64,000 nt of DNA from Vitrella brassicaformis CCMP3155 (lineage: Eukaryota > Protista > Chromerida). Position 1 is the first letter of the stretch; the number at the start of each line of letters is the position of its first letter. Of the stretch, positions 20,556-63,352 are shown in pieces. The stretch covers positions 1-64,000 of the forward strand of contig CDMY01000508.1 in NCBI GenBank assembly GCA_001179505.1, written 5' to 3'. The notes under the pieces were generated by a model, which saw nothing but the letters and a program-made list of their open reading frames with translations, had not been told where the DNA came from and searched no databases. The position numbers and the translations under genes were made by a program.

Positions 20556-22105
20556 TCACAGCACTGTGGTTGAGTCCCAGCAGAATCTCCTTGATGCTGA
20601 CTGCTGCAGGCCATCCAGCACACCCATCTGCGCCTCACTCAAACGGAAATCATACACCTGAGGTCACATGTGCACCACCACACACGCGAATGAACGAAAC
20701 GTAGACAAAGGCGCCTCTCCGTGCACACCTGCAGGTTGCCGCGAATGCGGTCTGTGTGTGCGCTTCGCGGTATGACGGGAACTCCATGCTGCAAACTCCA
20801 CCTCAGCAGCACCTGCGCAGGAGTGCGATGGCACTCAGAGGCGACGCGCAACACAGCTGGATGGGTCAGGAGAGCCGAGTCGCCTGACCCAAGTGACGCA
20901 TACCTGCACACACAACAGACAGACACATGAACCAAAGCGTGACATACCGTGCAGTGCAGTCTGGATGCGGCCGTGTCTGTCTGCGTACCCCTGAATGACC
21001 AGTGGAGCGAAGGCAGGCGCGTCAGCGCCGCTGGTCTTGTCCCTCGGGGGCAGCCACGCGAGGAGGTCGCGGCGAAGGCAAAACGGGTGAAACTCTACCT
21101 GAACAAACCAAAAGTGATAGACACAGGTACCGACTAACTCATTTTGCCTTGTCTGATTGATGGACATGTACCTGGTTGACTGCCGGTGGGATGCCTATCC
21201 CGTCCTCATAAAGCGCATCTAGTGGGTGGAAGCGACGCAGGCAGATCATACCATGAAAATAGCAACCAACACATGTGCGGTGCGCACCGCACGCCATTTG
21301 TGTGTGTGTACCGTACCAAGGTGGGATGGGTTGAAGTTTGACACACCGATGGCACGCACCTTGTTGTCACGACACAGACACTCCAAAGCCTGACGGTAGA
21401 AGCCATGACTGGGCGATCGGGGGGTCCATCCCTTTCCTTGATAAGTGGCTAACCTTCCAGCTCTCATGGCGTGCCTTCCGATGCACTGCGTCCATGTGCT
21501 GCCTCTGAGGACACGACGGGCGCAAAAGGCAGCCGTGAGGCGTCGTAAATGGCATACGTGGACACGTGACAGCCCCCAGCACTCATCGCGTGTGTGTCAC
21601 CTTGGCCACGCCGGGCCAGTGCAGCAGGTAGAGGTCCAGCTGCTCAACGCCCAGCCGTCTCAAGCTCTGCAGGCAGGCCGCGTAGGTCTTGTCAAAGCCC
21701 TGAACACAAGACACGACCACACAAACATACATTAGGACCTCACCTCAGTGACTGGCGTGGCGTGAATCTCCCGCGTACAGTACCATCTCGTATGGCGATG
21801 CCTTGCTGGTGATACACACATGCTCACCACCATGACGCGACCGCCATCGACTCAGCGCAGCCCTGCATACAACACCAACAGAGGAGAACCAAACACGTAT
21901 CCAATTCACGACTCATGAGTGCCACTGCTTACTTGACATGTTCTTCATTCTTGTAGATGGATGCCGTGTCGATAAGGCGATAGCCGCACTCTAGGGCGGC
22001 CTCCACCGCCACCTCGCATTCATGGCCCTGCAGCCGATACGTGCCGAAACCGACTCGCGGCATTTCGATGCCTTCCCCGATGCAAACTGTCTTCCTTTCG
22101 TCCAT
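20556..22105 (-). CDS. Aldo-keto reductase family protein
   Basis: First exon MDERKTVCIGEGIEMPRVGFGTYRLQG...GYRLIDTASIYKNE. Then LDLYLLHWPG, VRAIGVSNF, VEFHPF and TPAQVLLRWSLQHGVPVIPRS. Last exon ...RFCWDSTTVL* with stop at 20556. Confidence 0.93.
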
Positions 22106-22114
22106 CCTGTGTCT

Positions 22115-22656
22115 TGTCGGATAAATAGCGTGCTCAGGTTGCTCGTAGAGTAGTTGATGACCAAGCAGATGGAGTCAGAGTCTTTTCGCTTTGGAAAGAC
22201 CCAGTGTGCCTAACGCTATGGCGTTGGGCTTCCGCTAGAATAGTAGGCTCCGTTTCACGAAGCTACCTAAGAAAGCGGGTATCTCCCTGGGCTCTGGCCA
22301 GGGGTAACTGGCCAGACGGTATTATGTTTGGTTCTGCTGCTCGTTTCACGTAGCAGCCTGGGCTAGGGCTTGAGTGCCCTTCGACACCCCCTCTCACTCA
22401 AGCCCTAGCCCAGGCTGCTACGTGAAACGAGCAGCAGAACCAAACATAATACCGTCTGGCCAGTTACCCCTGGCCAGAGCCCAGGGAGATACCCGCTTTC
22501 TTAGGTAGCTTCGTGAAACGGAGCCTACTATTCTAGCGGAAGCCCAACGCCATAGCGTTAGGCAGACTGGGTCTTTCCAAAGAGAAAAGACTCTGACTCT
22601 ATCTGCTTGGTCATCAACTACTCTACGAGCAACCTGAGCACGTTATTTATCCGACA
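22115..22656. repeat. 262-bp inverted repeat with 18-nt loop (palindromic putative 5' LTR, TG...CA)
   Basis: 22115-22376 is the reverse complement of 22395-22656 with 4 mismatches (22128, 22171, 22188, 22206). Ends are TGTCGGATAAATA and TATTTATCCGACA. Confidence 0.97.
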
Positions 22657-22676
22657 GGTTAAGAGCCGAAGCGCTT
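22657..22676 (+). promoter_or_regulatory. Putative primer-binding site, half-tRNA-iMet type
   Basis: GGTTAAGAGCCgaaGCGCTT directly follows the terminal CA. It is one mismatch from GGTTATGAGCC, the complement of the initiator tRNA anticodon arm used by copia-type elements. Confidence 0.65.
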
Positions 22677-23506
22677 GGTGACTGGCGGACACACAGCAGA
22701 AACCGAGAAAGACAACTGACTGACTGAGAGAGACAGAGGAAACAAACACAGTCTGGCCGTGTCTCACAAAGATGAGCTCAGGTTTTCTCTTTCGTCTGTC
22801 GTTGCGGCTGGGACAGTATCTGACTGACCCCGGGTTGTCTTTCTTTTGGCTGCTACTGGCTGCTGTGGGCCTCGACCTCTGCAATGGGGCACCCGGCACG
22901 CTTATGACTATCAAGGACACTGCTGTGTGGCTCATGAAGCTAGAGATACAGATAGGAGACGTCACTATCGACTGGCCGAACGTCCTGGCACTGGCGGTAA
23001 CTTACGTCACTGTCTAGCTGCTGATGTCAGAACAGAGGACACGGAGGTTCCTGACGTGGCTGAACAAAGTCGCACGAGGCTGCTACGTCACGTGGTGCTT
23101 TTTTATACTTCCTGTCTTCACAAGCTGTGTGGTTGTGATTATCGTCTATTATGTGGTCCATCTGCTGGTTGTTTATGTGGCTGTTTATGTGGCGTATCTA
23201 CTGACGACCCTGACGATCATGGTGACGCAGATGACTGCTATGACGCTATCACAATGGCATTCGTCAGCTCAGTGGCATCTTACTTAGGGTGCGCAGCAAC
23301 GTTTGCCGTCAACCTGACTATGACAGCTATCGTCTATCCGTCTATCGGTACCCTGGCTGTGTGGTACCTCAACCAGAGAGCAACAGGTCTGGGCTACACT
23401 GGACTACTCTTGCTCATCGTGTGCATGATGCTGCTACGAGTGCACGCGCTGCCAATCTCACCAGCCAACCTGACACACAAGGGATGCAGACACACACTCG
23501 ATTTAT

Positions 23507-24856
23507 TTGTCAAACTGCTCGTGCTCACAGGCATCCCTACCTTGCTGGTTGGTCGTTGGGTGGTGTGGCAATGAAGGCGAAAGCGACGACACTAGCTCAA
23601 AGATACGTCCATGGGCATTTCCTAGTGAGTTCAAGGCTTACGGGGATGATTTCCAGAAATGGAAGACGCACTTTGAGTCGTGGGCGTCGATCAATGGCTT
23701 GGCTGACGTCGTGGCTGACGAGGCGCTTCACGAGAGACCCCAGCTGACAAAAGTCGGCGACAGGCCTGAAGTAGAAAGCGACCCCGAGACTGGCCTGTGG
23801 ACTGATGCTTACAACCAAGAGCACGCGAAGTGGGAGACGCTGAGCAAGCAGCAGAAGGACGAGATCCACAAGCGTCATCTCATTCACGCTGAGCTCTTGA
23901 CTGCCTGCAATGGCAACGACACTGCCTTCAATCTGGTGAAAAACGCACAGATAGAGGCAGCAGAGGAAGACAAAGACCCACTGTTAAAGGTGGATCGATG
24001 GCTGTCTTGGCGAGCTCTGATAGCTAAGTACAACCAGGTGTCACCCTCTGAGTTGTCGAAGCTGCACACCCTTATCCGCACGTATCAGTGGAAGGGCGAT
24101 GCATCCAATCTCGAGCCAAACCTCGGGTACATGATCGGCAAGTTCGAGAAGCTGAAGTCCCTTGAGGCTCAGCGCGCCAAGATGGACGAACAGCACACAA
24201 AGCTGGTGTATGGCTTGGACGAAACCGACAAAATAGCTGCCGTCAAAGCCATCCTGCCCAAGCAGGCATACCAACAACCGTTGGCCTTCCTCAACCTGCA
24301 GCAACAAAACGAAGCAAACAATAACTTCGCTGCGTTTCAGCAATTGCTGCGCAACCACTGTGACCAGAACCTCCCAAGGTCTGCACAGAATGCGAACACG
24401 AGCAGCTCAGCTGCCGGCGCACAGAATGACATACTCATGACCAACAATGGCGAGTCTGTCGTGCCCCCCTTCGCTCACTCGGCAATGACCCGTGATGAGG
24501 TGATGGCCAAAAGCAACTCCACCAAATGCGAGATCTGTGGCATGACGAACCACACGACTGGGGAGTGCTGGCACCTGGGCATAGCTCGGGATGCTGTACG
24601 AGCCCACACAGGCCGTGGCAGAGGCGGTCACGGGACATCCCGAGGGCGGGGCGGACAGAACGGCAACGGCCGTGGCCATGGTGGTGGACCTAAGAAGGGA
24701 AACAACCACACCATCGGCAAGAAAAACCACAAGGTGAGTGCCAAAGGCACCACTGAAACAGACAGAGATGTGCATCGCACCCACCAAATGAGTGAGGATG
24801 GCGAGAAGCGAGCAAGAGCAGCACACAGCGCTGATGGGAATGTGTGGCCCCCCTAA
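23507..24856 (+). CDS. Copia-type Gag
   Basis: N-terminal FQKWKTHFESWASINGLADVV, WRALIAKY, zinc knuckle CEICGMTNHTTGECW (CX2CX4HX4C) and a GRGRGG basic tract. The ORF opens at TTG, with no in-frame ATG before about 24130. Confidence 0.88.
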   Translation: MSNCSCSQASLPCWLVVGWCGNEGESDDTSSKIRPWAFPSEFKAYGDDFQKWKTHFESWASINGLADVVADEALHERPQLTKVGDRPEVESDPETGLWTDAYNQEHAKWETLSKQQKDEIHKRHLIHAELLTACNGNDTAFNLVKNAQIEAAEEDKDPLLKVDRWLSWRALIAKYNQVSPSELSKLHTLIRTYQWKGDASNLEPNLGYMIGKFEKLKSLEAQRAKMDEQHTKLVYGLDETDKIAAVKAILPKQAYQQPLAFLNLQQQNEANNNFAAFQQLLRNHCDQNLPRSAQNANTSSSAAGAQNDILMTNNGESVVPPFAHSAMTRDEVMAKSNSTKCEICGMTNHTTGECWHLGIARDAVRAHTGRGRGGHGTSRGRGGQNGNGRGHGGGPKKGNNHTIGKKNHKVSAKGTTETDRDVHRTHQMSEDGEKRARAAHSADGNVWPP

Positions 24857-25543
24857 CGTGGCTCAGGACATCAGAATGCCCACAGCTGTAGCTAGGATTC
24901 CCTCAGTTGTGCAGTGCAATGTCGCAGCTGATGTTCACGCTGACGCTGTCGATGCTCTTCATATACATGATGAGGCACTGCTTGACTCAGGCTGCAGCTG
25001 GCACGTCTTCACTTCTCCTGATTTCTTTGTGCACCTCAGGCCGCTCCCACCAGCAACCAGCCAACTCAAGGTGGCCAACGGGGCAAAGGTGGCTACAGAG
25101 GGCGAGGGCGAGGTGGCCCTTAGGGTCAACCTGAAGCCAACAAACAGGACAAGACGCCTGTACAAAGGCACGGTGCCAAAGACGCACATAGTGCGATTGA
25201 CGAATTGTCTGTATGTGCCTGACCTGAAGTACAATCTTCTCTCAGTCAGTGCACTCGAGGACGAAGGATACAATACACGCATGGATAGCCGCACTGTGTA
25301 TAAAGAACCATACACACATTCATTTGTGCGGAAGGGGAGGCTCTACGTGCTTGATGTGTCACCTGCTGCTCACGCGGACAGGGCGACCAACGAATGCACC
25401 ACACGAGAGGCGCCTGCAGCTGCTCACGCGGCCAGGCCGCAAGACGCTACCTATCCTGTGTGTAAGGAGAAGGAAGAAACGAATGGGAAGTCAATGACAG
25501 GCATCATGAATGCAGTCAGCAAGTGCCGTTCCTATTTCTCGAA
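24792..25543 (+). CDS. Copia Pol N-terminus: aspartic protease / beta-barrel region
   Basis: LLDSGCSWHVF, LKVANGAKVATEGEGEV and NCLYVPDLKYNLLSVSAL. In the +1 frame relative to gag. Confidence 0.88.
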
Positions 25544-26488
25544 ACAAGGCGGCATGTATTGCGGCTACGCAGCGGCTGGGATATCGAGCACTGACGGCGA
25601 CACAACACTCTGGGCACAGAGGCAGCACGAGTAGACGAGTAGCATACACGCATGTCTGCGTTTGTGATGCGGCTGTCGTGAGTGCAGGCCGTTTTTCGAC
25701 ATGCTGCCGATCAACGGCGGGCAGGTGACGCAGCAGCATGCTCTCGGCGGCCATTCATATGCAGCGCCCGGCTCCAGCAAAATCGACATGCCGCTGGTGG
25801 GCGAAGAACGTGATTTGCGTGTGTAGCCATTTTTCTGTGACGATCAGCCGAACAGCGGTGATTTCATGATGCCATCGAGCAGCGACATTGAGGACGGTAG
25901 ACGAAACTAGCGAAACGGGAGACAAGTGTTGTTCATTTCTCGTCTCCGTTAGGTTTTCTTGGCCGTCCTTTTGTGCCAATTCTGAAGCGCTAGGTATGAT
26001 AAACACGTGAAACACGTGCACTGAGATGGGAAGGAGGGGGGCTGCGTGCGTCTGTTTCAGTTTCGGTCGATGGAGGAAGAGTTGCAGGACCGGTTGTCTG
26101 GCACTTGACCACTAAGACACGCCCGACACATTCCGCCCACGCCAGCCCTTTTTTTCTCGGCTGTGTCCTGTGTTACATTCATTCACATACTCAGCAATGC
26201 GCTGGACGTTTTCTTCTATACGTGTTGAGGGCGGTGGCGTTCTTTCTGCACGTAATTTTTCGCCGTAGCGGCCAGCCTCGGTGTGAGGCAACCAGACATG
26301 TTTGTCAGACGTGTATGTGATTGAGTGACTTAGGGACGCTATGTGCTTGAAAGCTCGTTTCGTGTATCACATCACGTGCATGTCTTTAAGAGGCATAGGT
26401 CTTTGCACAGCTACTTCAACACAGTAATCATGCCCACACGTATCCTCTGCCAATCACATCCCTCTCGAGATCCAATCGCCGCAACACC

Positions 26489-26697
26489 GTGTATATATAT
26501 GACCAATGTCTGTGCGCATACACGTGCACATGCACGTGTGAACTTGGAGTGCGTGTATATGATGAACGTCTGTGTGCGCACACCTGCGCATGCTCGTGTG
26601 GACTTGGTGTGTGTGTATGTGACGAATGTCTCTGTGCGCACACCTGCGCATGCACGTGTCGACTTGGAGTGTGTATATGTGACCAATGTCTGTGTGC
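26489..26697 (-). repeat. 60-bp satellite, about 3.5 units
   Basis: Reverse-orientation copies of unit TCCAAGTCGACACGTGCATGCGCAGGTGTGCGCACAGAGACATTCATCATATACACACAC. Confidence 0.92.
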
Positions 26698-26744
26698 TGT
26701 ATAATGAGTTAAAAGAGGGTACTGGGCCCTGCATGGGGATATGT

Positions 26745-29700
26745 TACTTCGCAATTCGTGTGTCCGGTATCTTTATCCGTGCCCAGGCATGCCTTCTTGA
26801 GCGGGCAAGAAATCACGACAGGCATACCTGTTTGCCCGGCAGCATACCTGCAAAAAGCGATACTAATTTCACGGATTCTATGCTTCTACTCAAGGCGCTC
26901 CTTACGTTGTCGTTTCCGTGTTGTGGGTATCTCTAAGCAGGTAGTACCCATTCATTGTGTGCACCATAGAGTGATTCACTATTGGTTCGTTGCAGTCGAT
27001 GCCCTCAGCGCAATTCTCGCATTTGAGCTTGTTTCTGTGCCTGCGAAAGAGACACACGCAGACAACGGTTTAAGTGTTGCTTGCCAACCTGTCGACCTAC
27101 TTGATGAAGCCCTTCAAGCAGTAACATGCATTTTCTCCTATGCTGCCTTCGGTCGAGTTGAGGTCCGCTCCACACTCTTTGCAAGTTGCCTTTCCTTTCT
27201 CCATGACACCATACTGGCCTGCAACACAACATATATAACGCGTCGTCTTGCGTCTCTTCCGCGTGCTTTCGCTTTTATTGCATCCGTGAGCAAATGCATC
27301 AACTGCCTACCTGCGGGGCACGACCGACACGTTTGGTTGAATAATTCAGAGCCAAGCTCACAGTCGAGCTGACACACCCCGGAGCTGTTCCGAAAATGGC
27401 CATCTTTACAGTAACACAAATCAGCACGAACCCCAGACGCTGAAGGGCCAGAACGAAAGAGAAATATATATGCCTGTTTCTTTCATTAGCTCACTCACTC
27501 TCTCCGTATGGACAGTCGTGGCACTTGGAGGTGTCGACATCGTTGTAGTTGTACCGCAGGTCGATGGAGCGGGCGAGCTTGCTCAGTGGCTCATTGCTCG
27601 TGTCGACCACTGTGATGTTGTTGGACGCAAGAGTGAGAATGCCGGTCGATGAGAGGGTTTCGAAGCTGTTTTTTGAAGTGACGGAACCCTTGTAAAGGAA
27701 CCAACAGACAGACAAAAAAAGAAAGACGCAACAGCAGTAAAACGCTGTAAGTGTCATACCACGCAACGGTTGGTGACCCATTCTTTCACTTCTTGTATGT
27801 CAAAGTGATGGAGCAGATCGCATGTCAGCTTCCCATATAGCTGACACCCGGTGCAGTCAAGGTGCGTCAGACTGCGCACACAGGACAAGAGACACAGTCG
27901 GCTGATGCATTGCGTCTCTCATTGACCATGGAAGTGCTCGAAATCCTTGTAAAAACTCGGTGACGTCGATTTCCAGCGGATTGAATGAGATATCGATTTT
28001 ACGCAGCTGCGGCCAATCGGGAGGGGGCAGCACATTTAAGAGCTCGTAGGCCACAGAGGGCGTCGCTGAAAGCACGAAGCACGGAGAGTCAAACAAGCAT
28101 TCGCACAAATAAATGTCCTGTCCTGCGCACATGCATACATATATGTGGATTATCGGCGCGGTATCCCCTGGCTGTCTCGAACCACTCCGGCCACGTGAAT
28201 GAATTGAATCTGTTGAGGCCCAGATGAAGCTCCTCAACGGCAGGTAGCTGATACCAGGTTTCCGGTATGGTATCAAGGCCGTTGCTGTGAACACTGATAT
28301 ACTCCACGCTAGAAAAAAGCAACAGTCAGGAAAACTTTGATACGTCTCAGACACAAGTGCTATTCCATACGGTGACCCTCTTGCTTACGTCTTGGGAAGT
28401 GATCCATTGCCAGTAAAGTTCTCGATACGATTGTAGCTCAGGTCTAGCGTTCTGAGTGACACGAGGGGCTGCAGAGATGGCAACGTGCCGGCCAGGCTGT
28501 TGTTGCTCAGGGAGAGTTTCGTTAGCTTCGTCCAATTTTCCAGCGAGGCCGGGAGGCCTGTGAGACTGCACAAAACAAGAGTGAGAGCATATGAGCAGTG
28601 TTGTGCCCGTTGGTTGACAAGAAGAGACTATTACCTATTGTCGTCAGCGATGAACTCTTTTAGTTCCGTGCATTCCCTCAGCCCCTCAGCCACCTGGCCG
28701 TGAAACTGCACACACACAACAGTAGAGCCGCAAGAGCCCCCTTGACTCAATCTCGTACCATGTTATGGCTGAGATACACTATTTTCAGCTTTCTCAGCGA
28801 TCCAAGGGCTTCCAGAGTCCCCGACAAATTGTTCTCATCCAAATGTAGCTCCTTTAATTCCTGCAAGTTGGCCCACTGCTTCGGGATGGTGCCGGTGAGA
28901 TTGTTGCTTCTCAGGTTCAGGTGTTCCAGCTTCGTCAGGGAGCCCCACTCAGGAGGAAGGCTGCCGGAGAAGCCTTCGTTTTTCCCCCTTTGGCCGTGGA
29001 GATCAATTAGACATATCTTTGCCGCCTTGCTGAGAGATGCAGATAGAGACGCTGACAGCTGCAATCAGAACGGCAAACCGCTTTCTGTTCTCCGCCTTTG
29101 TGTCTCTTCGCTGACTATTCGTGTGTTGTGACTTATCTCGTTTTCCTGCAACTCCAGCTCCTCGAGATGCAGCCAGGTCGACCCAAAGCCATCAGGCAGA
29201 CTGCCATTTAGGCGATTATTCTGCAGCCTCAGATGTCTCAGGCGTGTCAGATTCTTGACAAACGCCGGGATGGAGCCAGAGATATCGTTCCGCTGCAGAT
29301 CAAGGGTCTCGAGACCTGTCAGTGCTCCGAGAGACTTAGGTATAGCACCACTCAAGCCAACATCCTTGAGCACAAGGGACGTCAAATTGCAGCTAAGCGT
29401 GGTAGGAACGGTCGCAAGATGCACGCCGGGCCGCTCGAGGGTCAGATACTTCAGTTGCGCCATGTTGACGAGCTGTCCTTCCGTAAAAGATCCCTCGAAA
29501 GCTGTGTCGATGATGGAGAGCAACTCGAGGGAGAGAAGGTTCAACCCAGGCAGTTGACCTGAAAATCCAGGGCCATTCTTCGATGAGCCTGCGATGTCGA
29601 GAGCTCTAAGGAACGTCAGGTTGCTAGTCGAAGTTGGGAGGCCTCCATTCAGTTGTGTCTGAGATAGACACATTAAGCCCATCTCTCGTTGCTGCCTGTG

Positions 29701-33450: not shown

Positions 33451-33977
33451 CAGCCTCCTTGCGCGAGTCCCTGAAACACCGCGGCTTGAGCTTTGGCGAG
33501 TTCGTTCAGGGTGCTCTGCTTTCTCGTGTGGCAGCCGCCAATGTGGAGATCAGAGAGCACGCGGAGACGGTACTTCTTGGGAGGCGCACTTGCCGATCGG
33601 TTGGATACATGCGACGGGCTGGGGACTCCGTGGGCGTGAAGAAATGATAATTCTGAAGCGGATGCCAATCTCTCATCGATGTTGGAGCCTGAATGCACAG
33701 GAACATGCGATGTCATGTTGCGCTGTCTTCAGTGCAGCGGTTCATGGCACTCAGACGTTCCCAGCTGCAGCAGGCCTAAGAGCAGGCCACCCAAGGGCGA
33801 TGGCGAAGAGAATGGAAATGGACCGATTAGTCATCGGCTCTTCTTTGACGTGTGAAGCGTCGCTCGAGGAAAGGGGCTTCGAGGTCCGGCCCCCAAGCGA
33901 GCATCATGAGCTGTCATGCATATCTCAGACTGCAGCGATGTAATGATGCATACCTGCGGCATAATGTCCGATCCATC

Positions 33978-34057
33978 ATGCGCAGGGGTGCGGACACAGA
34001 CATTCATCATATACACACCCTCCAAGTCAACACGTGCATGCGCAGGTGTGCGCACAC
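33978..34057 (+). repeat. 60-bp satellite, about 1.3 units
   Basis: Matches the satellite unit. Confidence 0.85.
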
Positions 34058-34758
34058 GCCCCTTGACCTTGCCATTGGTCGCCTTTGTAGGATCCCCCTC
34101 GACAGGATGGAAAAACACGAATGCAGTGTTATTGCTGCAATGCTTGGTGGACCGGAAGGATGGGGCATAGCCGTCTTGCCGCTTGAGGCCCTGCGTGTCC
34201 AGATGTGGCCCACTCCACATGGTATTCTGACGCAACCATGGATCCTTCGTCAAGTGCTGCCTGCAATGAAGGACGGCATTGCAGCATTCTTGAGACATCG
34301 ATCCACATCGCCTGTCTTGCGCAGCCTCGATTGGTGTTCTCGCTTTCGCAGCTTGTGCCTTGCACAGGAGGGTGACCTCGCAGAGTAAGAGATTATACGA
34401 GGAATCATTCGAGGTAGGACCAAGAGAGCTGTCGTGCTTCGTGATTCTCCAGGGAACTTTCAGGCCAAGCAGACTGGATGGAGGTGAAAGGCAGATTCAT
34501 TCCGTCTGCCTGTATACTACAGTGTTGAATTTCTTCAGGCATTCTCAGCAAGTTTTTGCACCGAAATGGGAGAGAAGGAGTTCCGAGACTCGATCAGAGG
34601 CCATGAGGAAGAGCTCTTTGAGCGGCTCGAATCTGCTGAAGCACTTCAAGTGGTTACCAAACGTAGAGCGCACAAGACGTTTTTCCTGCTTGTCAGTCCG
34701 CTCCGATCTCCTTCAGCTAATTGCATCTCTCTGGTCGAACACCACTGGGCGAAACAGT

Positions 34759-36050: not shown

Positions 36051-38343
36051 CCCCCCCCTACACACACCCCCGCGGACGGGTCAGATGCCCATCTCCATGT
36101 CTATCGCGTCCAGCTGTCTGTCTGTTTGCCTTCATTCACGTGCACTCTGGCGGCCAGACATGACACGAGTCATCTGGCGCGCTATTTTTCGCCGTGTGTG
36201 TCAACACCCACCCGCAAAGCCACTCACCATCTCGTATCGTACGTGCCATCTCTTCTCTTTGTCCACGATCATTCTCGCTGGCGTCGGGTCGGGTATGGTG
36301 TCTCTCTCTGGGATGTGTGTCAATGGGTTGAGGATAAATACTACACGGTGCGGTGTGGGTTTTAAGTGAGGCGGACTAACTGATTGCATTGACTGACAGA
36401 TTGATTGCATTGGGTTGTGTCGATAATTATAGTGAGGGCCAGCTATGAGATATCGACTGACTGACTGACTGACGGTATGGGCGTCCCTCTCTCGGTCTGT
36501 CTGTCTGTCTGGACAGTCACCGTGTGTGTAGTCGTGTGTATGTGCTGACAGGTCTGCTTTATCAAAGGGTGTGAGCGGGGGGGTACACTGACTGACTGAC
36601 TGACTGACTGAGCGGCCAGTGGATCAGACTGACAGTGTAGTGCTTGCTATGCTATCTAGGAATGGACTACCCAGGACGAGAGCTCAATGCAATGGATCAT
36701 TGATTGCGGGATTGACTGTTGGTTCAATGGGGCCATCCATCCATCCATCCATCCATCCATCCATCGCGGCCCGGGATGGGAGAGAGAGATCAGTCAATCA
36801 ATCTGACTGACTGACTGACTGCATGGCATGTATGGGATGGACGAGTGCGTACAGGACATGTGTGTGCGTGTCTGGTGTGGCTTGGCTGGCTCCCCTCTCG
36901 CTGCGATACGATGCGAGAGGTTTCCGTGTACGCTATGGCATGGCGCTCATGTAACCTTTCTGTTCTATGATGTGGTGGTGTGTGGTTGTGAATGATCTGA
37001 TCCCACCAATGCATTGGTGGTCTATCTCCGCTGCTGTCAGTCGGCCAAACGACGGATGTATGCATGCGGAGTTTAATAGTAGGGCAACGGGCTCTAGGCT
37101 TGACATACATACATCCCTGGGTGTCAGAGGGAGAGGGGGTGTCTTCATTGGTGCATTTGCGCGTTGGGCATGCAAGAGGGGGAGGGACATCGATCGTACA
37201 ATCGATGGATGAGACAGACAGACAGACAGACGGCCACCAAGCCAGCCATCGCGATGCGTGCTTGCGCTTTGTTTTCTAGTCCTTCCTTTCCTGCACACTG
37301 GTGGGTGGGTGAATGGCGGCCCTCGACTCGAGCACATACATACTCATGTACCTGGCCTGACCTGGCCGCCCCGCATCAAGGCGGACCCCTAGGTGGTTTT
37401 GGGCGGTAACGTGCGTCCCTATGGTTGTGTGTGCAGCACGACCGGGCTGCCCAGCGCTGCACACACAAAGGATCAGCCCCGAACTCGTCGAACCCGTCGA
37501 GATTCGCGTCGATTAGGGTCAAGGGTTTTCAAAACCCGACACCCAAGAACCCTGCAAGCATGATTTTGATACCAAAACGACCGGGATAGCGTCCTGAACA
37601 ACATGCGGCTCACCGTTTGTCAGCACGAGGCCAAGATCTCGAGATCTGACCGTCATTAGAGGAGCTAATGGAACTCATTGCGCCTCAACCACGACTGATG
37701 AGCCCTCGCTGAGACAGCCATATTGACCGGGATGACGCACTCGTTCATCCATCTATAGCTACCGAGCCCTCCCTCCCTCTCTCTCCCTCTGCAGCACCAT
37801 CCCGACTGTCTGACGATCACTTCACCCCCTCTTGTACAGCAACCAAGGCTCGCCCAACCGCCACAATCCGTCAGTCATCTCTCTCTCTCTCTGTGTCTGT
37901 CTGTCTATGTGTATCTCGTATGTAGGTATCGGAAAAGTGGCACATTGGGGGTAGCAGACTGCATCGATGAGAGACATGTCGTCTGTTCATTGGAAGTCTT
38001 CATGGATCTGAATGCGCACACTGTTGTCAGCTCAAGTGGCACAGATTCCGGCAAGTTCCCAAGACTGATTCACTGACTCCAGTCAATAAGCCTGTCTGTT
38101 GATGACTCGACGTTGAATATTCCCGGCAAAAATGTCTTCACTCGATATCGTGCAACAGGAAAGAAATTCTCAACGAGACACACATTACGCATGAATCAGT
38201 GGATCCGTGTCTCTGTCTCTGTGTCGCGAATGACGTTCCTTCGGTAACTGCAGACAGTGATGATCATTGGGCCTGCATCGACCTCAAAATTCAAGCCCAC
38301 CTCTGCCCGCGAGACTGTTGAGTAGCTTAGATATGTCAGTCGT

Positions 38344-38728
38344 TGCGCAGGTGCGCGCACACAGACATTCATCACATACACGCACTCCAAGTTCACACGT
38401 GCATGCGCAGGCGCAGGCGCAGGTGTCGGTAGGTGTGCGCACAGAGACATTCGTCATATACACGCACTCCAAGTCGACACGTGCATGCGCAGGCGCATGC
38501 GCAGGTGTCGGTAGATGTGCGCACAGAGACATTCATCATATGCACGCACTCCAAGGCCACACGTGCATGCGCAGATGTGCGCAAAAAGACATTCATCATA
38601 TACACGCACTCCAAGTCCACACCTGCATGCGCAGAGGTGCGCACACAGACGTTAATCATATACAAACACTCCAAGTCCACACCTGCATGCGCACGTGCAT
38701 GCGCAGGGGTCTGCACAGAGACATTCAT
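38344..38728 (+). repeat. 60-bp satellite, about 6 units
   Basis: Tandem copies of the unit. Confidence 0.92.
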
Positions 38729-39070
38729 CGGCCCCATTGTCCAAGCCAGAGGCTTCCATTTTGTCCCCCTTGCTGCAGATACATTCAGCCGCTGGGCGTC
38801 CGCCATGCTTGCTTTTCTCAAGACGCTCGCCAAGAGGAAACCACGCACTTCGGCCATCCCAGCATCCGAAGATGTATCTTTGCGAGAGAGCGCCAGTAAT
38901 CATTGGAGCCAGCTATGGTGAAGCTGATGAAGTACCATGCATTCCAGGTGGCCAACCGCTTTCAGAGAGCAGTGACCGCGAGGGGACCTGCTAAGACCAG
39001 TGCTTTTGCGGAGGACTTCATCACCCGAGGCCCTTACAGGCCTCACATGAGGCCATTATGTGTTGGTGTA
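38729..39070 (+). mobile_element. 3' fragment of CRE-like (restriction-like endonuclease) non-LTR retrotransposon
   Basis: GFHFVPLAADTFSRWASAMLAFLKTLAKRK...HWSQL/VKLMKYHA resembles the post-endonuclease C-terminus (FxPLxxETxGxxG...SVxLQRxNA). Paralogous to 55860-56260. Confidence 0.6.
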
Positions 39071-55180: not shown

Positions 55181-55410
55181 CGCAGGTGTGCGCACACAGA
55201 TATTCATCATGTACACAGAGATTCATCATATACACGCACTCCGAGTCCACCCGTGCATGCGCACGTGCATGCGCAGGTGTGCGCATACAGACGTTCATCA
55301 TATACACATACTCCAAGTTGACACGTGCATGCGCAGGGGTGCGCACAGAGGCATTCATCATATACACACACTCCAAGTCGGCATGTGTGTATGTGATGAA
55401 TGTGTGTGTC
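55181..55410 (+). repeat. 60-bp satellite, about 3.5 units with a short inverted end (55383-55410)
   Basis: Unit copies, then a reverse-oriented partial unit. Confidence 0.88.
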
Positions 55411-56479: not shown

Positions 56480-56978
56480 AACAACGCCCCGTCAAACTAG
56501 GGAGCTCCCCGCTTATTGCCTTCACTGCGTCCGACTCTGGATGGCCTCATCGACGTATTTGCCTGTGTGTGCAACGAATTCGTCAGGTTCAGAGAATTCC
56601 GGTAAAAGAAGAGAAAGGAGGAATAAACGAGAAAGACAGATGGCATGCATATCTACACATAGAGCCGGCACATATATTCGGCGTCTGAAACTACCCTGGC
56701 CACCTGTGCGAACCAATATTGGTGTCGTTTAATTGTATGCTCTTCACGGCAGCCAGGCGAGACCAGGCTTTTGGGATAGTCTGAAGAGCGTTGCTGTGAA
56801 GATTGACATGCTCCACGCTAAAACCAGGCAAGGTCAGACGTGCCTCAAACACACTCGTATTTGTCTCACATCTCTTCATTTGCGTCTCCGGAAGGAATCC
56901 ATTGCAGCCGAAGCCTTCGATGCGATTGTAGCTGAGGTCTAGCCATCCGAGTGACGCGAGGGGCTGCAAAGACGGCAG
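56480..56978 (-). pseudogene. Internal fragment of the LRR receptor family
   Basis: LPSLQPLASLGWLDLSYNRIE and SVEHVNLHSNALQTIP match exons at 28200-28490. The 5' side is cut by satellite. Confidence 0.7.
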
Positions 56979-56980
56979 CA

Positions 56981-58550
56981 AACACATTCATCACATACAC
57001 GCACTCCAAGTCGACACGTGCATGCGCAGGTGTGTGCACAGAGACATTCATTATATACACACACTCCACGTCCAAACGTGCACAAACACATTCATCACAT
57101 ACACACACTCCAGGTCCAAACGTGCATGCGCAGGTGTGCGTACACAGACATTCATTATATACACACACTCCGCGTCCAAATAAGTATGATATAGACACAC
57201 TCCACGTCCAAACGTGCATGCGCAGGTGTGCGCACAAACACATTCATCACATATACACACTTAACATCGACACGTGCATGTGCAGATGTGCGCACTCATA
57301 TATTCGTCATATACCCACACTCCACGTCCAAACGTGCAAACAGACATTCATCACATACACACACTCCAGGTCCAAACGTGCATAGAGACATTCGTCATAT
57401 ACACATACTCCAAGTCCAAACATGCATGCACAGGTGTGCGCACATAGACATTCGTCATATACGCACACTCCAAGTCCAAACATGCATGCGCAAGTGTGCG
57501 CACACAGACATTCATCGTATGCACACATTCCAACTTTAAACGTGTATGCACAGGTGTGCGCATAGAGACATTCATCATATACACACACTCCAACTCCAAA
57601 CGTGGATAGAGACATTCGTCATATACGCACACTCCAAGTCCAAACGTGCATGCGCAGGTGTGCGCACATAGAGACATTCGTCATATACACATACTCCAAC
57701 TCCAAACGTGCATGCGCAGGTATGCGCACACAGACATTCATCATATATACACACTCCAAGTCGACGGGTGCATGCGCAGATGTGCGCACATAGACATTCG
57801 TCATATACACATACTCCAAGTCCAAACGTGCATGCGCAGGTGTGCGCATAGAGACATTCGTCATATACGCAGACTCCAACTCCATACGTGCATGCGCAGG
57901 TGTGCGCATAGAGACATTCGTCATATACTCATATACGCACACTCCAAGTCCAAACGTGCATGCGCAGGTATGCGCACACAGACATTCATCATATATACAC
58001 ACTCCAAGTCGACGGGTGCATGTGCAGGTGTGCGCACATAGACATTCGTCATATACACATACTCCAACTCCAAACGTGCATGCGCAGGTGTGCGCACATA
58101 GACATTCATCATATACACATACTCCAAGTCCAAACGTGCATGCGCAGGTGTGCGCACAGGCAGGTGTGCGCATGCGCAGGTGTGCGCATAGAGACATTCA
58201 TCATATTCACACACTCCAACTCCAAACGTGCATGCGCAGGTGTGCGCATAGAGACATTCATCGTATTCACACACTCCAAACGTGCATGCGCAGGTGTGCG
58301 CATAGAGACATTCGTCATATACACATACTCCAACGCGCAGGTGTGCGCATAGAGACATTCATCATATACACACACTCCAACTCCAAACGTGCATGCGCAG
58401 GTGTGCGCATAGAGACATTCGTCATATACACATACTCCAACGCGCAGGTGTGCGCATAGAGACATTCGTCATATACACATACTCCAACTCCAAACGTGCA
58501 TGCGCAGGTGTGCGCATAGAGACATTCGTCATATACGCACACTCCAGCTC
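56981..58550 (+). repeat. 60-bp satellite array (variant units, about 26 copies)
   Basis: Tandem TCCAA(G/C)TCCAAACGTGCATGCGCAGGTGTGCGCA.AGAGACATTC.TCATATAC variants. Confidence 0.95.
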
Positions 58551-58676
58551 CACTCCCCCAACACACACACACACACACACGCACACACCGGCCCCAAAGC
58601 GCCACCACCGGCCCCAAAGCGTCACCACCGCGATACTCCCTCCCTTCCCGGCTTGCCCTCTTCCGTCGAACCTGTC

Positions 58677-59312: not shown

Positions 59313-59837
59313 CAGCACCACAAAACGATGTCAGGACAACACAGAAAAACGATGACAGACGATGCGGAGGTCCACTCCACGAAGGTGTCACACAGAAACA
59401 CTGACAGATCCCTGGGACAGAGGGATGACCCATCTCGCCGCGTCTCGGAACGCGTGATATCGCACGTTAGATCGTGCTCAGTGAGTGTGGATGTGGGCGT
59501 GGTCTGTGTGTGTGTCTTGCCGCCCTTCTGCCTTTCCCAGCGGTGATATGTGTATGGGCGTGCACTGAGGGTGTCTACGGGTCGGCCGCCTGCCGCCCCT
59601 CTCCGCCATGGAGGCTGGGGCGGCGGTGCGCTCTCATACACCCCCAGCACCCCGTGCGTGGTTGTTTTAAGGGCGTGTTTGTGTGTGACTGGGCGATCTG
59701 CATTGGCTGGCCGCCTGGGGATGGGCGGTATCTACGTATGGAGTCATGGTGCAGCACGCACGCACGCACGCCGCCTTCAAGCTGCTGCTGGGGTGGCGCG
59801 TGTGCGACGCTGTGTGCCTGCCCTGCGCACCCTTACG

Positions 59838-62335
59838 CCAAGTCGACACGTGCACGTGCAGGGGTGTGCACACAGATATTCATCATATACACGCACTCCA
59901 AGTCCACACGTGTATGCGCAGGGGTGCGCACAGAGACATTCATCATATACACGCACTCCAAGTCGACACGTGTATGCGCAGGGGTGCGCACATACACGTT
60001 CATTATGGACACACACTTCATGTCCAAACGCGCATGCGCAGGGGTGCGCACACAGACATTCCTCATGTAGACACACTCAAAGTCACAACGCGCATGTGCA
60101 GGTGTGCGCACTCCAAGTCGACACGTGCATGAGCAGGAGTGCGCATACAGATCTTTCTCATATACACACACTCCAAGTCGACACGTTTATGCGCAGGGGT
60201 GCACACACAGACATTCATTATGGACACACAATTCAAGTCCAAACGCGCATGCGCAGGTGTGCGCACTTTAAGTCGACACGTGCATGAGCAGGAGTGCGCA
60301 TACAGATCTTCCTCATATACACACACTCCAAGTCGACACGTGCATGCGCAGGGGTGCGCACACAGACATTGGTCATACATACACACTCCAACACCTGCAT
60401 GCGCAGGTGTGCGCACACAGACTTCATCAACATACCCACACTCCAAGTCGCGCAGGTGTTCGCACAGAGAAAAACATCATATACACACACTCCAAGTCGA
60501 CACGTGTATGCACCGGTGTGCGCACAGAGTCAGTCATTACATACACCCACTCCAAGTCCAAAAGTGCATGCGCAGGTGTGCGGACAGAGACACTCATCAT
60601 TTACAGCAGATGCACAGGTGTTCGCATGGACATGTGCGTGCGCAGGGGTGCGCACACAGACAGTCATCATATACAAACACTCCAAGTCCACACGTGCGTG
60701 CGCAGATGTGCGCACACAGACGGTCATCATATACAAACACTCCTCCAAGAAGACACGTGGGTGCGCAGGGGTGCGCACAGAGACATTCATGAGATAGACA
60801 CACTCCAAGTCGACACGTGCGTGCGCAGGTGTGCGCACAGAGACATTCATAAGACGCGCAGGTGTGCGCACAGAGACATTCAAGAGATACACACACTCCA
60901 AGTCCACACGTGCGTGCGCAGGGGTGCGCACAGAGACATTCATGAGATACACACACGTGCGTGCGCAGGTGTGCGCACAGAGACATTCATGAGACGCGCA
61001 GGTGTGCGCACAGACACATTCAAGAGATACACACACTCCAAGTCCACACGTGCGTGCGCAGGGGTGCGCACAGAGACATTCATGAGATACACACACGTGC
61101 GTGCGCAGGGGTGCGCACAGAGACATTCATGAGACGCGCAGGTGTGCGCACAGAGACATTCATGAGATACACACACTCCAAGTCCACACGTGCGTGCGCA
61201 GGGGTGCGCATAGAGACATTCATGAGATGCACACACGTGCGTGCGCAGGGGAGCGCAAAGAGACATTCATAAGCGCAGGGGAGCGCAAAGAGACATTCAT
61301 AAGATACACACACGTGCGTGCGCAGGGGTGCGCACAGAGACATTCAGTATGCACGTGTGGACTTGGAGTGTGTGTATATGATGAATGTCTCTGTGCGCAC
61401 ACCTGCGCATGCTCGTGTGGACTTGGTGTGTGTGTATGTGACGAATGTCTCTGTGCGCACACCTGCGCATGCACGTGTGGACTTGGTGTGTTTGTATCTC
61501 ATGAATGTCTCTAGGTGTGCGCATGCACGTGTGGACTTGGTGTGTTTGTATCTCATGAATGTCTCTGGGGGGCACATGCGCACGCACGTGTCGACTTGGA
61601 GTGTGTGTATCTTATGAATATCTCTGTGCGCACACCTGTGCATGCACATGTCGACTCGGAGTGTGTGTATATGACGAATGTCTCTGTGCGCACACCTGCG
61701 CATGCACGTGTGGACTTGGAGTGTGTGTATCTCATGAATGTCTCTGTGCGCACACCTGCGCATGCACGTGTGTACTTGGAGTGTGTGTATATGACGAATG
61801 TCTCTGTGCGCACACCTGCGCATGCACGTGTNNNNNNNNNNNNNNNNNNNNNNNNNNNNNNNNNNNNNNNNNNNNNNNNNNNNNNNNNNNNNNNNNNNNN
61901 NNNNNNNNNNNNNNNNNNNNNNNNNNNNNNNNNNNNNNNNNNNNNNNNNNNNNNNNNNNNNNNNNNNNNNNNNNNNNNNNNNNNNNNNNNNNNNNNGAGT
62001 GTGTATATGACGAATGTCTCTGTGCGCACACCTGCGCATGCACGTGTGGACTTGGAGTGTGTGTATATGACGAATGTCTCTGTGCGCACACCTGCGCATG
62101 CACGTGTGGACTTGGTGTGTGTATCTCATGAATGTCTCTGTGCGCACACCTGCGCATGCAGGTGTCGACTTGGAGTGTGTGTATATGATGAATGTCTCTG
62201 TGCGCACACCTGCGCATGCACGTGTGGCCTTGGTGTGTGTGTATATGACGAATGTCTCTGTGCGCACACCTGCGCATGCAAGTGTGGACTTGGTGTGTTT
62301 GTATCTCATGAATGTCTCTGTGCGCACACCTGCGC
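59838..62335. repeat. 60-bp satellite array with orientation switch at 61346-61349 and internal gap
   Basis: Forward units to 61346, reverse units from 61349. The period is exactly 60 at 62041-62100. Confidence 0.96.
61832..61996. other. Assembly gap (165 N) within satellite
   Basis: Run of N. Confidence 1.
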
Positions 62336-63352
62336 ATAGTGCGACTGACGAACTGTCTGTATGTGCCTGACCTGAAGTACAATCTGCTGTCAGTCAGCGC
62401 ACTTGAGGACCAAGGATACAATACACGCATGGATAGCCGCACTGTGTACAAAGAACCATACACACATTCATTTGTGCGGAAGGGGAGGCTCTACGTGTTT
62501 GGTGTGTCACCTGCTGCTCACGCGGACAGGGCAACCAACAACGAATGCACCACACGAGAGGCGCCTGCAGCTGCTCACGCGGCCAGGCAAGACGCTACCT
62601 ATCCTGTGTGTAAGGAGAAGGAAGACAATGGGAAGTCAATGACAGGCATCATGAATGCAGTCAGCAAGTGCCGTTCCTATCTCTCGAAGTGGTGTGCTGA
62701 CCGGTCAGGTTCCTCCTTTCTCGGCTTCACATTCTCGGGAGGTTTCGGTGCTGGTCGTACCGATGCCCCAGGTCGGGGTCAGGACAGCCCAGGGCGGGCT
62801 GAGGTGACTTGTTGCCACTGCAATTCTCCACATGTGGAACCGCCTGCAGAGCGACGTTTCCTGCACACAAAGAAAGGAACGATTGACCTCTGGCAACCAC
62901 ACACACTGCATGACTGTCATGTGTGCGGCAAGAGTTTCAGTACTGGTGTACCGACTCTTGGACGCCTTCCTGACTTCCACCAGTCTGCAGCGGATCTGCT
63001 GAGTCAAGGGCAACCTGCTGGTGCTGTCGAGGCTTCAGATCAGCCCGACGCTGCTGGTCCCTCTTGCTCGACGGACGAATCGGATCGACACACGCCAGAC
63101 GATCCACAAACACACACTGGCCATCCTGCAGGACAACCAAATCAACACATGGGCCATGATCCGTTTGCATCTCCTGTGCAGCCTGCTGTGCAGATACCTG
63201 TTCCACCCGAGGACGGAGATCCAACTTTCTGGCTACAACACAAGCGACTAGCACACCTCAATCGCCGCGACATGGATCTGCTGAGAAAAGACCTCGGTGA
63301 AGGGCTGCCTGTGTTCGACATCCCTCCATCCGACTGCCAACCCTACGGGTGA
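62335..63352 (+). mobile_element. Second copia pol fragment (protease C-half to GAG-pre-integrase)
   Basis: 62335-62688 is closely homologous to 25187-25543. It continues to WLQHKRLAHLNRRDMDLL...GLP...CQPY (pre-integrase). Confidence 0.88.

Follow-up and report, generated by a model that had tools for sequence, protein, structure and literature searches.

In vitro, minus-strand DNA made by retroviral reverse transcriptase is known to prime its own extension at hairpins, a reaction usually deemed a dead end (PMC6088434). In the cTAR-dependent self-priming of HIV-1, the growing minus strand folds back on a hairpin at its 3' end and the enzyme then copies that strand itself, so that an inverted duplication joined by the hairpin loop arises; this is an in vitro reaction at the end of strong-stop DNA, in the R region, and the dead end is suppressed by nucleocapsid (PMC6088434). 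Terminal repeats in inverted orientation are also seen in the DIRS-type elements, which use a tyrosine recombinase and make no target-site duplication (TSD). At the junctions of 2-LTR circles a short palindrome forms where two LTR ends meet, U5 being joined to U3 in direct orientation with only a few terminal bases palindromic. The literature searched offered no account of an integrated palindromic LTR of the type presented here.

The palindrome lies in a stretch of 64,000 nucleotides from Vitrella brassicaformis CCMP3155 (positions 1 to 64,000 of contig CDMY01000508.1, here C508), which is the whole stretch that was analysed and is called the window. Genome-wide searches covered the CCMP3155 assembly, 72,700,666 bases in 1064 scaffolds, and the other contigs named below (C577, C806 etc.) come from the same assembly. 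Public sequence data were compared with window positions 21700-23100 and consisted of Logan contigs only, which break in repeats.

The longest inverted repeat within the 64-kb window has its arms at 22115-22376 and 22395-22656. They are 262 nt each, match at 258 of 262 positions (98% complementary) and are separated by an 18-nt spacer. The whole unit, 22115-22656, is 542 bp long, starts with TGTCGG and ends with CCGACA. The arms, the 18-nt loop, the perfect inner 170 bp or so and the two unit ends are all as the first-pass annotation had described them from the letters alone, but the 542-bp LTR that it had proposed for this unit is, by alignment with other copies, an LTR of 272 bp in inverted orientation (22115-22386). 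A second copy of the 542-bp unit, as a 3' LTR or a solo LTR, was not present in the window, and an empty pre-insertion site was absent from the assembly. The parts of the locus are as follows.

21947-22105, minus strand: first coding exon of an aldo/keto reductase gene (Pfam Aldo_ket_red match).
22110-22114: TGTCT, left copy of a candidate 5-bp TSD; the same 5 nt are at C577:236-240.
22115-22386, minus strand: complete inverted 272-bp LTR, U5 end outward and U3 end inward, containing the left arm 22115-22376; collinear with all other LTR copies over its full length.
22377-22394: 18-nt loop, from alignment with five 3'-LTR copies.
22377-22386: loop part, last 10 nt of the inverted LTR, from alignment with the 3'-LTR copies.
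22387-22394: loop part, CCCCCTCT, complement of the 3' end of the polypurine tract (PPT), from the same alignment.
22395-22402: 8-nt joint CACTCAAG, which is LTR positions 11-18 and also the complement of CTTGAGTG upstream of the PPT, from alignment.
22395-22656, plus strand: right arm, sense LTR positions 11-272 with the first 10 nt (TGTCGAAGGG) missing, from alignment.
22657-22674, plus strand: primer-binding-site (PBS) position, GGTTAAGAGCCGAAGCGC, conserved in all 5'-LTR copies and assigned by position only.
22675-25543, plus strand: copia internal region, gag position and then Pol_BBD, degenerate and in several frames, from domain search and copy comparison.

When the 542-bp unit was used as a query against the genome, about a dozen other copies were found, and each of them matched one arm only. 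The LTR of the family is 270-272 bp long (a diverged subfamily has 255 bp, and one copy that contains an insertion has 281 bp) and reads TGTCGAAGGGCACTCAAGCCC...TATTTATCCGACA in the sense direction. Five 5' LTRs, on C69, C778 (at 8113), C756, C709 and C403, are followed by GGTTAAGAGCCGAAGCGC and by internal sequence as from window position 22657. Five 3' LTRs, on C554, C464, C778 (at 1594), C806 and C475, are preceded by ...GGTCTTGAGTGAGAGGGGG, a polypurine tract, and in these copies the tract GAGTGAGAGGGGG stands directly upstream of TGTCGAAGGG. The sequence that follows 22656 in the window is 88-95% identical to the copies on C69, C778, C756, C709, C403 and C651. In the C778 copy, gag_pre-integrs, rve and SH3_retrovirus are found in an ORF upstream of RVT_2 (E=4.7e-41), the order of Ty1/copia, and of such domains the window copy has kept Pol_BBD alone (24792-25634), because the element stops at 25543. 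Judged from these comparisons, the family is Ty1/copia with an ordinary single LTR of 272 bp.

The copies of this family are fragmented in the short-read assembly, split over many contig ends and N gaps. Perfect 5-bp TSDs nevertheless made it possible to re-pair three split insertions, whose LTRs have TGTCG...CGACA ends:

C554:52126-52414 with C69:125-394: TSD GATGC.
C464:71145-71433 with C756:23463-23743: TSD AGGGA.
C475:5306-5579 with C403:1133-1387: TSD TTGCG.

Re-joining split insertions by their TSDs would be useful for scaffolding the CCMP3155 assembly.

The palindrome had also been reported to be followed by a copia PBS and gag. It is indeed followed by a Ty1/copia 5' internal region, but a tRNA gene matching the 18 nt at the PBS position, GGTTAAGAGCCGAAGCGC, was not found in the assembly, and the ORF at the gag position, split over several frames in the window copy, had no Pfam match. 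The complement of the PBS position 22657-22674 resembles an anticodon stem-loop with the loop CTCTTAA, in the style of the half-tRNA priming of copia and Ty5. Another fragment of the same family, about 1 kb of pol that is 94-95% identical to other copies, was observed at 62332-63340, flanked by a 60-bp satellite. It overlaps the part which is also present at 25184-25543 and thus belongs to a different copy. The same contig carries, outside the window at C508:68945-69592 (minus strand), a degenerate RVT_2 from another copia family. Repeats abound in the right two thirds of the window, with arrays of the 60-bp satellite in both orientations (26429-26771, 33971-34097, 38349-38766, 55203-55388, 56955-58626, 59763-60647 and 61248-62397) and a 140-bp tandem repeat at 60813-61273.

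The alignment with the normal copies reveals how the palindrome is put together. The five 3'-LTR copies read ...CCCTTCGACA CCCCCTCT CACTCAAG ACCC..., and the left half of the palindrome is collinear with them through CACTCAAG; it consists of a complete inverted LTR and 16 nt of PPT-side sequence. The left, inverted copy, which carries the loop in its own orientation together with these 16 nt, is the complete one of the two. The divergence comes at 22403, where normal copies have ACCCTCTACGA and the window has CCCTAGCCCAGG, which is the LTR from position 19 onwards in the sense direction, and the right half then runs into the 5' internal sequence of the family. The joint CACTCAAG is the stem of a native hairpin, CTTGAGTG-18 nt-CACTCAAG, that is found in all five normal 3' ends. 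The inverted repeat of this hairpin is 8 nt, or 11 nt with one mismatch, and its folding energy as single-stranded DNA is -10.5 kcal/mol in the window, compared with -8 kcal/mol for a normal 3' copy. Read 5' to 3' from 22115, the plus strand is a minus-strand cDNA, then the loop, then its own complement and then the PBS. The word at the palindrome junction, CCCCCTCTCACTCAAGCCCTAGCCC, occurs once in the 72.7 Mb with 3 mismatches allowed.

The reading that we favour, and hold to be rather probable, is that the locus is one aberrant insertion of an ordinary Ty1/copia element, the minus-strand cDNA of which snapped back at the PPT/U3 hairpin and was then integrated. The minus-strand cDNA would have copied U5, R, U3, the polypurine tract and 8 nt more, and its 3' end, CACTCAAG, would have paired with CTTGAGTG 18 nt upstream on the same strand. 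Extension by the reverse transcriptase along its own strand would give the sense LTR from position 19 to 272 and after it a copy of the primer, which is the PBS. A 3' end of this kind is like that of plus-strand strong-stop DNA, which makes a second strand transfer and completion possible, and it is conceivable that the snapped-back strand was transferred to a second minus strand and completed there. The double-stranded cDNA, with a U5 end on both sides, would finally have been inserted by the integrase with a 5-bp duplication, TGTCT. The first-pass annotation had offered, as one of its two alternatives, that the U5 half was copied by a fold-back event. The anatomy, the hairpin and the polarity all argue for fold-back copying, but more than the U5 half was copied, as LTR positions 11-272 occur in both orientations at the locus.

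It is likely, from the sequence of its end, that C577 holds the right end of the same integration event. This contig starts inside a sense LTR (1-235), which ends ...TATTTATCCGACA and is followed by TGTCT (236-240) and unique DNA. Between the C577 LTR and the left arm of the palindrome the identity is 99%, and the flanks to the left of the palindrome and to the right of the C577 LTR are both CT-rich and share TTTCGTCC. The TSD match is 5 nt only and would arise by chance with a probability of about 1/1024 for each of a handful of candidate ends, and the two ends are on different contigs. A normal 5' LTR preceded by TGTCT was not found in the assembly, and a U3-type end with TGTCT, that is CCCTTCGACA+TGTCT, was absent genome-wide. 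If C577 is the right end, then both outer ends are U5 ends, and TGTCT on either side suggests a single integrase event, which would exclude a fusion of independent insertions, an integrase-free capture at a break and an internal inversion. The identical attachment ends that had been ascribed to a palindromic LTR family would, with C577 as the right end, be a property of the whole insertion, both of its ends being U5.

Other candidate ends and matches were rejected. C358:94776 has TGTCT and the LTR start with 2 mismatches, but it is not an LTR. The match at C806:14817-14893, 99% identical to the loop region, is a normal 3' LTR/PPT border beside an N gap. A PPT-like word with TGTCT at 37131 was considered as a 3' end that lacks the LTR, and its upstream sequence is unlike the family. 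Three matches to TATTTATCCCACATGTCT (C430:24495, C647:15403 and C761:11979) belong to an unrelated repeat, which shares this 18-mer with the LTR end and flank of C577 and may be a separate LTR family whose U5 terminus is similar.

The continuation of the window on the right side conflicts with the C577 pairing. Two other copies go on with GTGGTGTGC at the point where the element in the window breaks off, 25543, and 25544-26428 is single-copy DNA in the genome. With C577 as the right end, C508 would have to be a chimera formed within the repeat, unless the insertion was rearranged at some later time. Contig C806, which at its end shares 25449-25543 (94/95) with the window, also contains the remainder of pol, the PPT and the beginning of an LTR, which fits a chimeric C508 without proving it.

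The differences between the arms also speak against the snap-back, since copying predicts identical arms, yet there are four differences (22128/22643, 22171/22600, 22188/22583 and 22206/22565). They are unevenly placed, all within 92 nt of the outer ends, and the inner 170 nt are perfect (p about 0.015). At 22188 the left arm and the C577 LTR share a derived state which is absent from all other family copies, and the right arm has the family-majority base at the partner position 22583. This is not what one would expect had one arm simply been copied from the other; possible causes are a chimeric contig, a template switch in R, and errors. At 22600 the right arm of the window has a T, and every contig aligned there (four runs) has a C. 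That the four mismatches argue against a read chimera, as had been maintained, carries little weight with all of them in the outer 92 nt and the T at 22600 read as C in every contig aligned there.

The main rival to the snap-back is an assembly artefact, which we regard as unlikely, if still to be taken seriously. The joint would then come from the repeat resolution of velvet, from gap closing by GapFiller or IMAGE, or from a few hairpin-chimeric library fragments, and the true junction behind the inverted LTR would be a different one. The CCMP3155 assembly was made from Illumina reads only, with SGA correction, velvet at k=75, SSPACE, GapFiller, ICORN, IMAGE and REAPR (PMC4501334), and a short-read-only pipeline with several gap-closing steps bears on how far contig C508 can be trusted inside repeats. 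The scattering of the family over contig ends and N gaps points the same way, as does the possibility that C508 is chimeric at or before 25543, and the perfect inner 170 nt could be a single collapsed repeat node that was used twice.

Comparison with independent data separates the two junctions of the inverted LTR. Where the reductase flank meets the inverted LTR (21700-22144), the junction is real; it was bridged with 0 mismatches by contigs of three culture studies and of one marine-sediment metagenome. The fold-back joint at 22394-22403 was not bridged by any contig among the Logan contigs listed, and the T of the right arm at 22600 was never seen in them, both of which are in keeping with an artefact. 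Neither the fold-back joint nor the flank/LTR junction was present in JGI metagenome contigs. Against an artefact, however, k-mers of at least 11 across 22394-22403 must derive from reads, velvet having been run at k=75, and the 9 kb on either side of the palindrome are free of N gaps. Furthermore, the joint is placed exactly at a real hairpin and gives a biochemically coherent single strand, and the C577 TSD pairing independently calls for an inverted LTR on the left and a sense LTR on the right. The sediment metagenome, of 2025, matches window 21940-22144 without a mismatch, which implies either that the Vitrella insertion occurs outside the culture collection or that DNA of the strain was in the sample.

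A rearrangement after integration is an improbable explanation. A microhomology-mediated deletion at CACTCAAG could have joined two head-to-head copies, or the interior of the element could have been inverted between short inverted repeats. The 8 nt of microhomology at the joint would be typical of MMEJ, satellites and fragments of transposable elements are abundant to the right, and the element is truncated at 25543. But independent insertions would differ in their TSD and both outer flanks, with C577 as the right end, are TGTCT, and a deletion that hit exactly the pair of sites yielding a perfect palindrome would be a coincidence. An inversion, on the other hand, would leave CTTGAGTGCCCTTCGACA and the TSD at the other end, whereas CTTGAGTGCCCTTCGACA is found only once in the window and CCCTTCGACA+TGTCT nowhere in the genome.

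Short inverted repeats seed palindromes after double-strand breaks. A chromosomal fold-back during replication or repair, in which a break beside an integrated LTR leaves a 3' tail that forms a hairpin and primes synthesis, would profit from a hairpin that folds well as DNA. We nevertheless find it very improbable, since such a product would run into an inverted copy of the aldo/keto reductase flank, while the right arm is instead followed by the PBS and gag, and since the PPT sequence in the loop places the template in the context of a 3' LTR or a cDNA. The first alternative of the first-pass annotation, a copia lineage with genuinely palindromic LTRs, has hardly any probability left: nothing beyond the palindromic locus in the window speaks for it, and it is refuted genome-wide, by the comparison that the annotation itself had proposed, as some 12 other LTR copies are single (255-281 bp, three TSD-verified insertions included) and the junction word is unique.

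The snap-back insertion would have placed an LTR next to a gene. The Aldo_ket_red match at 21947-22105 on the minus strand has E=3.2e-05 on 53 aa and 23.6 bits, just under the 24-bit cut-off, and the AKR-like motifs LDLYLLHWPG and QVEFHP in downstream minus-strand segments suggest a multi-exon gene that extends to about 20800. Its ATG (22105-22103) and the outer end of the inverted LTR are 9 nt apart. The LTR sense strand is without any ATG, and the start codon of the reductase is thus the first ATG downstream of the left LTR. With their U3 regions back to back, the two LTRs face outwards, and the left one points into the reductase gene. This geometry fits the symmetric bidirectional promoter that had been predicted, and an LTR-driven expression of the reductase is possible from the arrangement of the sequence; among the public runs on record with matches to 21700-23100 none was an RNA run. 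As both LTRs point outwards, the long hairpin RNA predicted along with the promoter would need read-through from outside. We propose only tentatively, and with less confidence than the snap-back insertion as such, the full course of events: that a self-primed cDNA, usually taken for a dead end, was completed by a second strand transfer, integrated via two U5 ends and became a fixed 542-bp head-to-head palindrome, the left LTR of which may drive the reductase gene.

If the snap-back reading is true, the locus is a natural, chromosomally fixed record of an error of reverse transcriptase that is known mainly from test-tube work with retroviral enzymes. It would also imply that a cDNA with U5 at either end is an acceptable substrate for insertion by a Ty1/copia-type integrase. 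The reductase gene, with two back-to-back LTR promoters at a distance of 9 nt, would be a concrete case in which to look at LTR-driven expression. For the annotation of this genome, the message is that the LTR of the family is 272 bp long, that the palindrome is found at a single locus and that most copies of the family are split over several contigs.

Among the known systems, the self-priming of HIV-1 is alike in the fold of the nascent minus strand on a hairpin and in the extension along its own strand. It differs in place and outcome: at the window locus the first strand transfer would have preceded the fold, which would lie at the PPT/U3 border, and the product was seemingly completed and integrated into a chromosome. 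With the DIRS-type elements the locus has in common the inverted orientation of the terminal repeats, but the family has a DDE integrase (rve) and 5-bp TSDs, which rule against a DIRS-like identity, and the inversion at the window locus would be an accident at one place. The palindrome of 2-LTR circle junctions is likewise of another kind, because in the window whole LTRs are inverted, U3 to U3, around a loop that contains PPT sequence. With an ordinary Ty1/copia insertion the locus has in common the family sequence, the 272-bp TG...CA LTR and the PPT, and the family also has the 5-bp TSD and the integrase before the reverse transcriptase. What sets the locus apart is the additional, inverted LTR, fused to a 5' LTR short of its first 10 nt; both outer ends of the insertion would be U5, and its 3' LTR is not on the same contig.
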